Sequence record: NC_048037.1
Reading direction: 5' to 3' (one strand)
DNA length: 37,311 nucleotides
In this document: piece by piece, positions 4,317 through 9,802 of the stretch
How positions within the stretch are numbered: position 1 is the stretch's first letter
How the letters are laid out: every line of letters starts with the position of its first letter
Made by a program: the position numbers and the translations under genes
Notes under the pieces: model-generated
Databases searched by the model: none
What the model was told of the DNA's origin: nothing
The model's input: the letters and a program-made list of their open reading frames with translations, nothing else

Positions 4317-4823
4317 TTATGTTGTTATTTTTTTAATTAGTTCAATTATTTTATCTTGCATTTGTTCTATTGCTTTTTTATCTAAGCTATTTTCTACTTG
4401 TCCTATCGTTGAATTTGCTATGTAAATTATTTCGTGAATAAGTATAGATTGAAATAGTATTATATTTTTTATGTGTTTTTCAAGTAATTCATGGGCTTCC
4501 GATTCTTTTTTTAAACTCTCATTTGCTCTCAATAGGTAGTTCCTTATTTCTTCAAATTTCTTAAGGTTTTTTTCACTCAACATGTTTTTATTTATATCCG
4601 GGTTTTTGATTATTTCGTTTGTGATAGTTGCCAAATTATCAATAATTTGTATCGTATTATCTATTATTTGTTGATATACGTATAATGAGTCCTTGTTGAT
4701 TACTATGATCCCTCTGGTTATTAACGTTAGGTAAAATTTTTGACGGTCTTTTAACAATATATCTAGTACTTCCACGTATCTTTCATTTATTTCTTGAACG
4801 TCCATTTTCTTTGCCACCTTCAT
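4317..4823 (-). CDS. Hypothetical alpha-helical protein (168 aa)
   Basis: Last gene of a coupled minus-strand operon; amphipathic helices. Confidence 0.75.
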   Translation of the reverse strand: MKVAKKMDVQEINERYVEVLDILLKDRQKFYLTLITRGIIVINKDSLYVYQQIIDNTIQIIDNLATITNEIIKNPDINKNMLSEKNLKKFEEIRNYLLRANESLKKESEAHELLEKHIKNIILFQSILIHEIIYIANSTIGQVENSLDKKAIEQMQDKIIELIKKITT

Positions 4824-4832
4824 TTAAAATGA

Positions 4833-4985
4833 CTATTTAAATATGATCTTCATTTCTATTGGGTCTATATACGGTGTTTTATCTTTAACTAACGGTACCA
4901 ACGCTTTCGGGATCCTAACGTAATATATTGTCTCTTTGCCTACTTTTCTTCTCGAAAGGTTTGTTTTTATCAAACGCTCATCCAT
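4833..4985 (-). CDS. AbrB/SpoVT-like swapped-hairpin DNA-binding protein (50 aa, not in ORF track)
   Basis: Manual translation MDERLIKTNLSRRKVGKETIYYVRIPKALVPLVKDKTPYIDPIEMKIIFK; RKVG..YYVRIPKAL fits the AbrB/MazE pattern; fills the gap between two same-strand genes. Confidence 0.7.
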   Translation of the reverse strand: MDERLIKTNLSRRKVGKETIYYVRIPKALVPLVKDKTPYIDPIEMKIIFK

Positions 4986-5007: not shown

Positions 5008-5765
5008 TTAAAAATATATACTACTTTTTTGCATTTCAACAAGTGTCATAATGCTGTCCGTGTCTACCCTATTTTTTACATGTTCACGTATTGTTTCCTT
5101 TAGCTCATCGTATTCGTTTTTCTTCATTTTTAATGCGTATTCTATTGCCTCATCAAAACTTTTGATGTCAATCGTGTCTAGTACGTAGGTGTTTAGTAAC
5201 GTGTTTTTGACTACTATGTCACCCGTTACGTAAAAGTGGATTCCCGGCGTGTCTTTGTGTGTTATCGGTATACATGCGTTTGCCATTGCCTCGTAAAGGT
5301 ATAAGTCTTCGCTTTGTTTTGACAGATTTGTATAAATACAAAAATGGTGTGACGCGAATTCTTCTAATCGGTTGTTTTTAGCTTGAACTATGTCGAAAAG
5401 TTTGAAGTACTTGGATTTCCTAAGATATGAAATTCCGTACATGTCAAAATAATAGTTATCAACGATTAACATGAATAATGATTTATGTTTTTTTTCCTCT
5501 ATACGGAAAATAGGAGGCGGTAACGTTTCGTACACGTTGAAAAATTTATTGTAACGTTCTGAGGGTGTGATTATCTTTAAGTTGTATAGATTAACGGTTT
5601 TAATGTCGTATGCGTCGGTAAAGCAATAAATAAAGCGTCTTCTTGTGTCTATTGATGAGAGAAAAACATCTATTACTTTCCCGCATTCTGTAAAAACTAG
5701 TTTAGCTTTTTCAAGTGTACTATTTGTCCTTACGGGGAAGTATTTAAAAAAGGGGAATTTATCAT
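5008..5765 (-). CDS. Divergent GT-B glycosyltransferase-like protein; full length (~252 aa) needs a -1 frameshift at 5745-5751
   Basis: C-terminal part (LSKQSEDLYLYEAMANACIP..EYALKMKKNEYDEL) is paralogous to 19540-20466 (LSHSEGFGLPPVEAMGVGTIP..EYARGMKREDYEEL). The frame stays open about 86 codons upstream of the track start at 5535 with no ATG/GTG/TTG. Confidence 0.7.
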
Positions 5766-7553
5766 CTACGTAGATAGTTGGAACGATAGTAAATCATCCT
5801 CCTTTTCAATTGTTAATGTATATTCTTTATCTTCCTCTGTGGCTATTTCAACCCTTACTCCTTCGATTTTTACAGGTATGTGTGTTCCCGGTTTTGCAAT
5901 TTGGAATATTGTCCTATCAAATATGTAGTTGTCAAGTCCTAGGATTCTGGTCACGTCTTCTAGCAATGTCGGGTTCTCGTGTGCTAGGTTTAACACGTTT
6001 TCGAGGAATGTTAGATATATGCCTTCTCTTTGTATTATTTGTAATAGTGTTACGTAAGGTCTTTCGAAACTATACGTACCGTGTTCATGAATTTCGAAGT
6101 ACGCGTGTATGTATTCGTGAAATGTGGCGATCATGTATAATGTTTCTAGTGTGTCTTTCTCAGCCATTCCCAGTTCCGGGGCTTCTATTTTTGCCATTAT
6201 CCTTGGTGGGGATAGGAATATATACGGTTTTTCAGCGAATTTTGTTATTCCCAACAAATCGCTCGTTTGGTACGCGTAACTGTCCTTTAACACGAATAGG
6301 GGTATTTTTTGTAGTTTATAATCTAGTATTGCGTAATCGTTTGTTATCCCGAGGAAAGCTAATACTGTGTTAAATGCCCATAGACCTGCCAATACTCCTT
6401 TCTTTATGTCATCAGGCAGTTCTGCGAACTTGTATGAGTTGTTTAAAAGTATCATTATGTCTCTATTTTGAGAATATTCTTTTGCCGTGAATGCCTCATA
6501 TCCTTTCTTTCTAATTCTATTTACAACAGTTTCAAATATGTAATCATATTGTATATTGAATCCGAACCCGTTACCTATCATTATTATTTCTTTTAACGAT
6601 CCTACAATGATCGGCTTTACATCAAAGGCTTTAGCTATTGAGATTATTGCGTCTGCAAATACGTCATTCAGCTCTACCATGATGGGGCTATAATCACCCG
6701 GGAAGTTAAACAAGAACGCGTTCCCCTCTTTTTTCCCGTTTTCTATAATCGCTTCCTTTATTAGTTCTTTGTCTTCATTTGATAATTTGCCGAGTTGTTC
6801 GTATAACGTTGAGTTATATGGATTTACTTTTGTGCGGTACTGGTCTGCGTATACACAACATAAGTTAACGCTAAACGGTAGATCCCACTTTCCGGAATAC
6901 ATCCCGTTGTGGTATACATTACGTCCTTCTTTCAACACTTGGGTTTTTCCCTTCCACAATAAATCAATGTCAAGTTTTTTCCCTTCCACGTAAACGGTGG
7001 TTTGTCCTTTTGTTTCAGCTTTTCCCCGTAATACAACAAGTCTACACATGTCATCTACGTCTTTGATTTTTATTGTCCCGTTACAATACCCCGCGAACAT
7101 GTATGCGTGGTTATCAGTTAACACGAGTGCGGTTTTTCCGATTAGTAACATGGTACCCATTGCTTGTTTCAGCCCTACCCCGAACTTTCCTATTAAACAA
7201 CACGGAGGTTTTGTTTGAGTTGTCTTTGTCGTGAAACCCAATTCAAAGGCTTCCTCACTTATTGCTCCTTCAGACCTTATTACATAATAACCGTTTTCGT
7301 AATCCAGTTTTACGTTTCTATATGCGTTCAAGAAGTCAAGCGTTTTTTGTATTTCGTTATCAATCGCGTTCTGTAGGAATTCTCGGATAACGAATAACAG
7401 TAATTGGTTTTCATCTTGTGATGTATACGTGTAAACTGACTCGGACACAGTCCTAAAATAATGTAATCTGATATCGCTTGATATGAACGCTTCGTCGAAA
7501 GTTAGTTTTATTGGTTGGTTTATGGTGATAGGAGGTATTTTTATGAACTCCAT
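5766..7553 (-). CDS. GHKL (MutL/HSP90-like) ATPase with C-terminal HExxH metalloprotease-like motif (595 aa)
   Basis: N box IREFLQNAID, ELGFTTK, G2 box GKFGVGLK, GQTTV; HEYIH..HEHG near residue 480. Confidence 0.85.
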   Translation of the reverse strand: MEFIKIPPITINQPIKLTFDEAFISSDIRLHYFRTVSESVYTYTSQDENQLLLFVIREFLQNAIDNEIQKTLDFLNAYRNVKLDYENGYYVIRSEGAISEEAFELGFTTKTTQTKPPCCLIGKFGVGLKQAMGTMLLIGKTALVLTDNHAYMFAGYCNGTIKIKDVDDMCRLVVLRGKAETKGQTTVYVEGKKLDIDLLWKGKTQVLKEGRNVYHNGMYSGKWDLPFSVNLCCVYADQYRTKVNPYNSTLYEQLGKLSNEDKELIKEAIIENGKKEGNAFLFNFPGDYSPIMVELNDVFADAIISIAKAFDVKPIIVGSLKEIIMIGNGFGFNIQYDYIFETVVNRIRKKGYEAFTAKEYSQNRDIMILLNNSYKFAELPDDIKKGVLAGLWAFNTVLAFLGITNDYAILDYKLQKIPLFVLKDSYAYQTSDLLGITKFAEKPYIFLSPPRIMAKIEAPELGMAEKDTLETLYMIATFHEYIHAYFEIHEHGTYSFERPYVTLLQIIQREGIYLTFLENVLNLAHENPTLLEDVTRILGLDNYIFDRTIFQIAKPGTHIPVKIEGVRVEIATEEDKEYTLTIEKEDDLLSFQLST

Positions 7554-8485
7554 TTAGTACACCTCATTCCTAATGTATTAAGTCTTTCCAATTCTCTTAT
7601 AACAGTTTTTCCGTACTTTAAGCTTGTCACCTCTTCGCAGTACCCTTGTATTAAGTTCAACTCGGCAAGACGTTTAAGTAACGCTTGTACAACCTTTGAT
7701 GCGTTTGACTCATTTATTGCCATTTCAAAGTTTATTTGTGGCACGACAAGCGTGTTAACTTGTGATATGTACATGTCCAGTTCAGGTGGGTTTGGAAGCG
7801 AATATTGAATTAACGCTTGTTGGACAAAGTCCAGTAAATCTTGTTTTTCGGTTGCGGGCGGTGGTATAATTACATTTTCAGTTGTGATTTTCTTACAGAA
7901 TAAGTTGGGGTCACTTACAATGTATACCGGTTTTTTAAATATTTGGTATACGCTTTCCGCTCGTGATAATGTTGTGTTTTGTAGTACTATTATGTCAGAA
8001 CAATCCATGATTTTCTTTCTATTTTGATAAAACGCGGGACATTTGTACACGTTTTCAGCTATTTCAACACAAAACGGTTTAAGATTCAGACTATCAAGGT
8101 ATGCTTTCAATTCATCCTTAGTTACGTAGTGGTCTATGTCTATGTTTCTTCCAGTCCAATAATCTTCAACCGTCGGTACTCCGCATACCTTAGTTGCTAA
8201 CGGGTTGTAAAATATCTGTGTGTTAAAGTTTACGAAAATTGTTATATTTTTGTAAAACGATACGGTCTTTTTCATCCCGTTCTTGTCGTAACAGTAATTC
8301 TTAAAGCATACCATTTTCACTCCATCCCTTTCGTTATTGGCATAGAGTAATTCGAGTAGTCCTTTTGATGGTTTCATTGAACCCGGTGTTTCGATTTCGA
8401 TAACGTAATGCTTGGGGTTTATATTTAAGTTTTCAGTGCATACGGTTAACGCTAGGTTTTTGAAGAATTCGTTTTGGAATATCAT
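7541..8485 (-). CDS. Hypothetical protein (314 aa), coupled to the GHKL ATPase
   Basis: Long ORF overlapping the start of the ATPase gene. Confidence 0.85.
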   Translation of the reverse strand: MIFQNEFFKNLALTVCTENLNINPKHYVIEIETPGSMKPSKGLLELLYANNERDGVKMVCFKNYCYDKNGMKKTVSFYKNITIFVNFNTQIFYNPLATKVCGVPTVEDYWTGRNIDIDHYVTKDELKAYLDSLNLKPFCVEIAENVYKCPAFYQNRKKIMDCSDIIVLQNTTLSRAESVYQIFKKPVYIVSDPNLFCKKITTENVIIPPPATEKQDLLDFVQQALIQYSLPNPPELDMYISQVNTLVVPQINFEMAINESNASKVVQALLKRLAELNLIQGYCEEVTSLKYGKTVIRELERLNTLGMRCTKWSS

Positions 8486-8589
8486 CCTGTCTCACTTTTC
8501 GGGTATCTGAATGTTGATAGCAGATATCCCCATGTCAATATCTCTTTTTGCATGTCTTTTTTACTACACATAGCTTCACTATATCTCAT
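8482..8589 (-). CDS. Small leading ORF (35 aa, not in ORF track)
   Basis: MRYSEAMCSKKDMQKEILTWGYLLSTFRYPKSETG; TATA (TTTATTAA) at -23..-30; stop overlaps the next start as ATGA. Confidence 0.55.
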   Translation of the reverse strand: MRYSEAMCSKKDMQKEILTWGYLLSTFRYPKSETG

Positions 8590-8628
8590 AGGTATATTTA
8601 TATTGACGTTTTTAATAAAGTTTAATGT
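8590..8628. promoter_or_regulatory. Overlapping divergent promoters
   Basis: TTTATATT at 8597-8604 (+) and TTTATTAA at 8619-8612 (-), each about 25-30 nt upstream of an ATG. Confidence 0.65.
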
Positions 8629-9237: not shown

Positions 9238-9802
9238 TCAAATACGCGGTATCGGAAACTTTAATTTTTGCTATTTGCGATACACGTTTTATGGTGTTAT
9301 AGTAGGGTACTTTTACGTTTATTTGTTTAACTACAGTGTTTGACGTATCGTATTCCGTTATTTTACTTATCTGTGATGCAATTAGGTATTCGTTGAATTT
9401 GAACTTTTCGATAATCCTGTAAAGTTGTGTCACATATTGCGTAACATAGATGTCCTTAGGTATCCTAGCCGATATCATTAATTTCTTTATTTCTTGTATT
9501 TTTACAATTTTCACTTGATAAGCGTTACCGTACTTTTCGAGGAGTAACATTAGACCGTTTTCGTACACGTAATAGAACGTGTTTTTGTCTTTTTTATAGC
9601 CCATCTTGATGAGTTCACTTTCAAACTGGGATGGACTATCAACGTTTAGTATGTCAACTAGTGCTACCTTGTACAACTTGTATGTTTCCACATATCCGGT
9701 TGATTGAGTGTAGGGTATTGTCTCCTTGGGTGAGTTGAAGTAATATCGTATAGGTCTCTTCATGTATATTTTTAGTTTTCCCACAGCCGTTTTAGGTTTC
9801 AT
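9221..9802 (-). CDS. Hypothetical protein (193 aa)
   Basis: Coupled downstream of the GT-B gene. Confidence 0.8.
   Translation of the reverse strand: MKPKTAVGKLKIYMKRPIRYYFNSPKETIPYTQSTGYVETYKLYKVALVDILNVDSPSQFESELIKMGYKKDKNTFYYVYENGLMLLLEKYGNAYQVKIVKIQEIKKLMISARIPKDIYVTQYVTQLYRIIEKFKFNEYLIASQISKITEYDTSNTVVKQINVKVPYYNTIKRVSQIAKIKVSDTAYLITLLD

Follow-up and report, generated by a model that had tools for sequence, protein, structure and literature searches.

The DNA examined here, referred to as the window, was identified by megablast as the whole genome (37,311 bp) of Sulfolobus filamentous virus 1 (SFV1; GenBank accession number MH447526; Lipothrixviridae, Alphalipothrixvirus). An open reading frame (ORF) on the minus strand at positions 5766–7553, ORF11-595, encodes the 595 amino acid (aa) minor virion protein VP1, annotated as "putative ATPase VP1". 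VP1 lies in a minus-strand gene chain in the order ORF13-35, VP2, VP1, glycosyltransferase (GT), a 50-aa ORF and a 168-aa ORF. ORF13 overlaps VP2 by 4 nt (ATGA), VP2 overlaps VP1 by 13 nt, VP1 and the GT abut directly, and gaps of 22 nt and 9 nt follow. These coordinates and overlaps bear out the gene order given in a preliminary description made from the sequence alone. Four parts were distinguished in VP1, all coordinates being on the minus strand: a GHKL (Bergerat-fold) module resembling those of Hsp90, MORC and sacsin (approximately residues 31–250; 6804–7463), a middle alpha/beta domain without assignment (approximately residues 254–375; 6429–6794), a third domain that is probably a zincin-like metallopeptidase domain (residues 376–535; 5949–6428), and a small C-terminal beta domain, also without assignment (residues 536–595; 5769–5948).

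The peptide ATFHEYIHAYFEIHEHGTYSF (VP1 residues 476–496; 6066–6128) includes an HExxH motif followed by a further histidine, H479-E480-x-x-H483-x7-H491, representing the proposed zinc ligands and catalytic glutamate. The codons are at 6117–6119 (H479), 6114–6116 (E480), 6105–6107 (H483) and 6081–6083 (H491), and the interval 6081–6119, where the preliminary description had placed an HExxH...H arrangement, thus runs exactly from the first to the third histidine. VP1 has nine histidines in its 595 residues, four of which we place in the 13-residue motif stretch. Only 0.01 occurrences of HExxH are expected in VP1 from its composition, and this HExxH is the sole one in the genome when stop-free stretches of at least 100 aa are considered in all six frames.

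Homologues of VP1 were sought exhaustively with a profile among 1.84 billion representative proteins, and a threshold of E < 1e-30 returned only nine family members. Those with a known context are encoded by SFV1-like viral contigs bearing the SFV1_VP4 and SFV1_VP5 coat-protein families. A second, word-indexed search with the nine-sequence profile found no further members, pattern scans of GTDB genomes for relatives of VP1 or of the P0008 protein (see below) returned no match, and tblastn matches of the VP1 C-terminal domain in a phage collection (E up to 10) were limited to SFV1 and its relatives SBFV1 and SBFV2.

The sequence HExxH-x6/7-HG[TS] was found to be invariant in all eight homologues that span the region, which share 19–37% identity with SFV1, and the signature of the family can be written HExxH-x6/7-H-G-[TS]-x-x-[FW]-[ED]. 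The preliminary description had made its reading depend on conservation of the motif in homologues, and HExxH, the third histidine and the next glycine persist down to 19% identity. The 165-column domain alignment contains seven invariant columns (H479, E480, H483, H491, G492, L503 and N519), and the probability that five of the seven would fall inside any 14-column window by chance is ~0.006. The third-ligand position is occupied by H491, 6–7 residues past H483, with the conserved acid at position 497 (E/D) as an alternative. As a glutamate is not needed for metal binding alone, the invariance of Glu480 in the alignment favours catalysis.

An AlphaFold model of residues 376–595 (mbfba67fa4943), built with eight sequences, had a predicted local distance difference test score (pLDDT) of 90 and a predicted template modelling (TM) score of 0.88, compared with a pLDDT of 68 for the full-length model (m4e0d94c592b8) built on a three-sequence alignment. 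The C-terminal model begins with a helix (residues 381–400), three strands (419–421, 435–439 and 443–447) and a short helix (450–454). These are followed by a long helix (465–485) whose C-terminal end carries HExxH, a loop containing H491-G-T, a helix (494–508) bearing F496 and E497, two further helices, and a separate beta domain (536–595). The three-strand sheet (419–447) is thus predicted to precede the HExxH helix in sequence order. Minimal zincins such as SprT and WLM have the same order of secondary-structure elements.

When the C-terminal model was compared with the PDB using Foldseek, only 31 weak matches were returned, which included the zincins deuterolysin (E 1.1) and BlaR1 (E 6). 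In the sub-threshold list from BFVD, SprT-like proteins were found at ranks 3, 5, 8, 13, 19 and 26, the best with E 0.18, probability 0.69 and a target TM score of 0.46, and other annotated metalloproteases at ranks 6, 25 and 45. This apparent enrichment of the modelled domain's neighbours for zincins is suggestive but is not a statistic, having no background frequency of SprT-like names in BFVD to be set against. The top PDB matches of residues 376–595 were to the nucleocapsid base and plug proteins of Autographa californica multiple nucleopolyhedrovirus (TM ~0.3), and the viral-library list also included nudivirus gp13-like proteins and baculovirus occlusion-derived virus proteins. Together these matches had E values of 0.13–6 and TM scores of ~0.25–0.33, and they are probably helical-bundle noise and are not regarded as meaningful.

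The closest comparison for the domain is with the SprT-like, SPRTN, Wss1 (WLM) and YgjP-like proteins, in which HExxH is likewise followed by a short spacer and H-G-x-x-[FW]. A like linear signature, ...IRLNP...PHELAHL...PHGKEW, is present in Escherichia coli SprT. The VP1 model matches SprT/WLM-type minimal zincins in its predicted succession of a helix, three strands, a short helix, the HExxH helix, a histidine loop and a helix, and SprT-like proteins, which are common in viruses, are its best structural neighbours, though below threshold. However, there is no sequence similarity to the SprT type beyond the motif, and the spacer between HExxH and the next histidine is 6–7 residues in the VP1 family but 9–14 residues in the SprT proteins compared. 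VP1 also lacks a zinc ribbon or zinc-binding subdomain of the SprT type, having the beta domain instead, and unlike members of that group it is part of a fusion with a GHKL module and is carried in the virion. A pattern scan of IMG/VR for SprT relatives found no match, and an SprT profile searched against the PDB retrieved only zinc fingers, via the SprT zinc ribbon.

The N-terminal half of VP1 carries two canonical motifs, an N-box (E-x-x-x-N-A-x-D), R57-E58-F-L-Q-N62-A-I-D65 (7359–7385), that includes the catalytic Glu58 and the Mg-binding Asn62 and is kept in eight of the nine family members, and a G2 box, G122-K-F-G125-V-G127 (GxxGxG; 7173–7190). In a Foldseek search with the full-length model only the GHKL domain was matched, to the ATPase domains of Grp94, HtpG, African swine fever virus and T6 topoisomerase II, MutL, PMS2 and MORC2 (best E 1.8e-3, probability 1.0). 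The VP1 family profile reaches proteins bearing Pfam HATPase_c_3, and hhalign gave probabilities of 92–96% between the family and HATPase_c_3 proteins or a phage GHKL-like protein. VP1 itself has no match to Pfam HATPase_c, and the NCBIfam sacsin N-terminal ATP-binding-like domain gave a sub-threshold match in five of nine members. The GHKL assignment made in the preliminary description was therefore confirmed by the N-box, the G2 box, Foldseek and hhalign.

The stretch spanning residues 200–250 (6804–6954) is the most conserved in the protein (LLW...VYHNGxxSGxWxLPFSVNxCCVxxDxYR), with a pLDDT of ~26 in the three-sequence model, and a similar VYxNGxY...DRxRR stretch is present in the PHROG 6077 phage protein of L006. 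This segment may be a lid or phosphate-sensing element of the GHKL variant.

Two natural variants bear on the relationship between the halves. P0009 (L015:1906–3348; 480 aa), encoded in a 7.5-kb viral contig with VP2 and GT homologues on its flanks, no longer has the N-box or the G2 box but retains HExxH..HG. P0008 (L014:6001–7131; 376 aa), encoded in a 2.5-Mb cellular chromosome (GenBank accession number CP045687.1), consists of the GHKL and middle parts only, and no zincin remnant was found in the ~875 bp without a called gene 3′ of it. The two halves of VP1 are therefore separable, the zincin motif being the more persistent one in viruses. The neighbours of P0008 include a NACHT-TPR protein and an AAA_15/AAA_21 and DUF4276 pair, a setting that may be a defence island.

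The Bergerat fold, N-box and G2 box of VP1 are shared with the MORC, Hsp90, MutL and topoisomerase II ATPase domains, from which VP1 differs in having Ser or Asn at the position of the DxGxG aspartate and in the absence of a recognised S5-type transducer domain. The same variant GHKL core, with [SN]-x-G for DxGxG, is found in phage proteins of PHROG 6077. PHROG 6077 and T4 rIIA-type proteins resemble VP1 in being viral and in combining a GHKL N-terminus with a variable C-terminus. However, the likeness to PHROG 6077 is confined to approximately residues 52–140, and the phage proteins are without the HExxH domain. The nearest architectural parallel is with Tiamat, sacsin and NO VEIN, in which an N-terminal sacsin/Hsp90-type GHKL domain is followed by a Wss1-like fold. 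In Tiamat, the sacsin-type GHKL ATPase precedes a Wss1-like metalloprotease fold that is without HExxH and was judged inactive (bioRxiv 10.64898/2026.09.30.754977), whereas HExxH is intact in VP1. Unlike Tiamat, VP1 is a viral structural protein whose 595 aa leave no room for TPR repeats or a PD-(D/E)xK nuclease, and the PADLOC Tiamat model had no match in the nine members.

Both VP1 and VP2 have been identified as minor proteins of SFV1 virions by liquid chromatography–tandem mass spectrometry, with 68 peptides and 80.3% coverage for VP1 and 36 peptides and 80.6% coverage for VP2 (PMC6105669). As 68 peptides cover 80% of VP1, both of its halves are present in virions. No virion proteins are larger than VP1 and VP2, and the terminal structures had no protein assigned to them (PMC6105669). 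The same study reported the GHKL domain of VP1 (HHpred probability 98.2), proposed chaperone-like or MORC-like roles for it, and described the C-terminal half as of unknown function and provenance (PMC6105669). The preliminary description, which knew of no described function for this architecture in archaeal viruses, did not have this information; the GHKL half and the virion location were already published. No paper describing a domain of protease type in VP1 of SFV1 or in related proteins was found in a literature search, and it is the zincin-like assignment of the C-terminal half that is new.

Our preferred explanation, to which we give a probability of roughly 0.55, is that VP1 is a four-part protein containing a metallopeptidase domain of zincin-like type that may act as a regulated virion protease. 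Several results weigh against it. The C-terminal domain of VP1 and the eight homologues has no match in Pfam, NCBIfam, PADLOC or PHROGs, and in Pfam at E values up to 10 none of the nine members matched the SprT-like (PF10263) or YgjP-like (PF01863) family; E. coli SprT, used as the positive control, matches both. Searches of PDB sequences returned only noise, whether the query was the single protein or a profile of the full length or of the C-terminal part. Foldseek comparison of the C-terminal model found nothing in the PDB below E 0.13, and the sole significant match in BFVD was the SBFV1 orthologue, a member of the domain's own family. The profile was also aligned by hhalign with E. coli SprT alone, with 17 enterobacterial SprT proteins and with a mixed set that combined bacterial SprT-like proteins with seven from phages. 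Alignment was limited to the HExxH...HG..[FW] block (18–24 columns, P 0.005–0.035, probability 1.5–7%), and without the motif the score of the upstream part was 7.9, equal to the mean of 200 column-shuffled controls (7.9). The GHKL half lacks the Asp of the G1 box DxGxG: Ser94 (7272–7274), in "IRSEGAIS", stands opposite the Asp of "IKDNGRGI" from the HATPase_c_3 protein P0013, and five members have Ser and two have Asn at this position. Finally, the coat proteins VP4 and VP5 are essentially full length in virions.

The resemblance to SprT, Wss1 and YgjP proteases suggested in the preliminary description is in line with the signature, the topology and the sub-threshold viral Foldseek matches, but finds no support in Pfam, and profile alignment extends only to the motif. 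In the structural comparison that it had proposed for this region, the element order is zincin-like in a model with a pLDDT of 90, and no Foldseek match with E < 0.1 was found beyond the domain's own family. From its signature and modelled fold, the domain is probably a zincin-like metallopeptidase domain of the SprT/WLM/YgjP type that forms a family of its own by sequence. The DxGxG aspartate contacts adenine N6 in GHKL enzymes. As this residue is Ser or Asn in the VP1 family, ATP binding by the GHKL module is plausible but no firmer than that. The idea of an ATP-gated clamp is weakened by this substitution and by P0009, which is without the N-box and G2 box yet keeps HExxH.

The gene preceding VP1 in the chain, VP2 (ORF12-314; minus strand, 7541–8485), encodes a 314-aa protein for which no Pfam or PDB relative was detected. 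A VP2 homologue adjoins the VP1 homologue in every contig with enough sequence, and the order is VP2 then VP1 in SFV1, SBFV1, SBFV2 and contigs L003 and L015 but VP1 then VP2 in L008 and L010. The adjacency was observed in five independent viral contigs, two of which have the inverted order. Survival of the adjacency when the gene order is inverted argues for VP1 and VP2 being a functional pair. Seven cysteines (C16, C101, C139, C149, C162, C197 and C309) are invariant in the VP2 family and may serve in a metal site or in disulfides. Just 5′ of the VP1 homologue in L008, a 42.5-kb SFV1-like contig, an ORF at 9257–9760 has a Pfam match to KwaA, which identifies its product, at the level of sequence, as a virus-borne KwaA-like protein. 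KwaA is a component of Kiwa defence.

A GT gene follows the VP1-VP2 pair in five contigs, including the inverted L008/L010 group. In SFV1 the annotation covers only 5008–5535 on the minus strand (175 aa), but a single open frame makes up the body of the gene between 5793 and 5008, overlapping the VP1 stop and colinear with the 253-aa GT of SBFV2 (45% identity). The 230-bp "gap" between VP1 and the annotated GT is thus coding, and the frame matches the N-termini of the SBFV2 and L015 GTs (IYVDDKFPFFKYF vs VYVDTKYAFFKYL). The frame is open from a TGA at 5794–5796 and contains no in-frame ATG, GTG or TTG before 5535. The only nearby ATG (5763–5765) follows the VP1 stop immediately (TAGATG) and belongs to the VP1 frame, and a T_TTT_TTA heptamer (5745–5751) is located five codons past it, where a -1 shift would enter the GT frame. 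SBFV1 has an identical sequence in the ATG/heptamer region, and RNA structure 3′ of the heptamer was unremarkable (z = -1.5). Translation of the GT would thus begin either at a non-canonical start or by way of a programmed frameshift. The earlier description of the gene as frameshifted is partly right, as its body is a single open frame but the sole nearby ATG is in the VP1 frame.

The remaining genes of the chain, all on the minus strand, are ORF13-35 (8482–8589), the first, for which SBFV2 has a 35-aa ORF at the equivalent position, ORF09-50 (4833–4985; 50 aa), which follows the GT, and ORF08-168 (4317–4823; 168 aa), the last. A possible archaeal TATA-like element, TTTATTAAAAA (8609–8619), was recognised by reading of the sequence 20–30 nt 5′ of the ORF13 ATG on the same strand. 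The label AbrB that had been applied to the 50-aa ORF found no support in Pfam, its sole match being to a PHROG of unknown function.

Among the alternatives to a regulated protease, the one that survives best, while still improbable, is a structural, non-catalytic role in which VP1 and VP2 would build the mop-like termini, the histidine cluster would hold a metal for stability at 80 °C and low pH, and the GHKL module would be a pseudo-ATPase scaffold. Such a role would suit the two largest virion proteins of a particle in which the terminal-structure protein is unassigned. It would also fit the missing adenine-contact Asp, the loss of the ATPase motifs in P0009, the want of a significant fold match to an active protease, and the inactive Wss1-like fold beside the GHKL domain of Tiamat. 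However, the catalytic-type Glu480 is invariant together with the histidines, whereas inactive zincin folds such as that of Tiamat are without HExxH, and Glu58 and Asn62 of the GHKL module are kept in eight of nine members.

It is unlikely, more so than a structural role, that VP1 is an assembly or maturation factor, i.e. an Hsp90-like chaperone and protease whose task would be to fold or trim the proteins of the virion during assembly and whose presence in particles would be mere entrapment. The SFV1 authors proposed that the GHKL domain has a chaperone-like role, and phage zincin-like peptidases have been proposed in the literature as maturation enzymes. However, VP4 and VP5 were recovered from virions with 99–100% peptide coverage and with apparent masses that match the full-length proteins (PMC6105669). 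As both were essentially full length, cleavage of the coat during maturation is unlikely, and the maturation of virion proteins raised in the preliminary description is disfavoured as far as the major coat proteins are concerned. The number of VP1 peptides and their coverage also suggest real incorporation rather than trace carry-over.

A chemistry other than peptide cleavage at HExxH..H, such as metal-dependent hydrolysis or oxidation acting on a glycan, lipid or nucleic acid, appears less probable again. The gene adjoins a GT in five contigs, HExxH enzymes with non-protease chemistry exist, and membership of a protease family lacks support, but the topology is that of peptidases and the weak structural neighbours are peptidases without exception, and the HExxH..HG..[FW] signature is common to SprT proteins. 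That the motif, short and without a database family, is a functionless product of chance is very improbable and is effectively refuted by its conservation, as it is invariant over eight homologues in a domain with only two other invariant columns and an expectation of 0.01.

If VP1 is a regulated virion protease, the zinc ligands would be H479 and H483, where the long helix ends, and H491, in the next loop, with the acid at position 497 as an alternative third ligand, and E480 would act as the general base. The edge strand of the three-stranded sheet (419–447) would dock the substrate. The enzyme would be packaged inactive and become active after the particle contents reach the ATP-containing cytoplasm. 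The GHKL module would dimerise on nucleotide binding, as in Hsp90, MutL and MORC, and so control access to the protease, with nucleotide binding positioning or unlocking it on DNA-bound protein. The most attractive substrate would be the virus's own VP4/VP5 coat, leading to uncoating, with DNA-bound proteins of the host as an alternative, and VP2 could be a partner or a substrate of VP1.

The proteases SprT, SPRTN and Wss1 act on DNA-bound proteins. Because of this, and because the coat is uncleaved in virions and the particle is ATP-free, an enzyme that acts on DNA-bound protein at the stage of entry is favoured. This step is speculation, to be rated from possible, when stated in general terms, down to unlikely as the claim becomes more specific. 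In its most elaborate form, which we consider unlikely, VP1 would be a virion-delivered, ATP-licensed uncoating protease that stays silent in the particle, where there is no ATP. Once entry has taken place, the ATP-bound GHKL module would clamp the nucleocapsid end and the SprT-like, DNA-dependent zincin would cut the VP4/VP5 arms, which wrap and penetrate the A-form DNA, so that the genome is set free, VP2 being an adaptor or inhibitor.

We know of no account of how the protein-wrapped A-form DNA genome of members of the Adnaviria is released after entry, or of how their terminal structures are built. The findings presented here provide an enzymatic candidate for the second half of VP1, one of the few conserved minor virion proteins, and turn an unannotated domain into a testable hypothesis for which point mutants (E480Q, H479A/H483A and E58A) can be defined. 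The combination of a sacsin/Tiamat-type GHKL ATPase with a Wss1-like fold was noticed only recently, and VP1 provides an example of it in which the active site is intact, a hint that the combination may predate defence systems or extend beyond them. If the reading of VP1 as an uncoating protease is true, it would be the first known uncoating enzyme of an archaeal filamentous virus.

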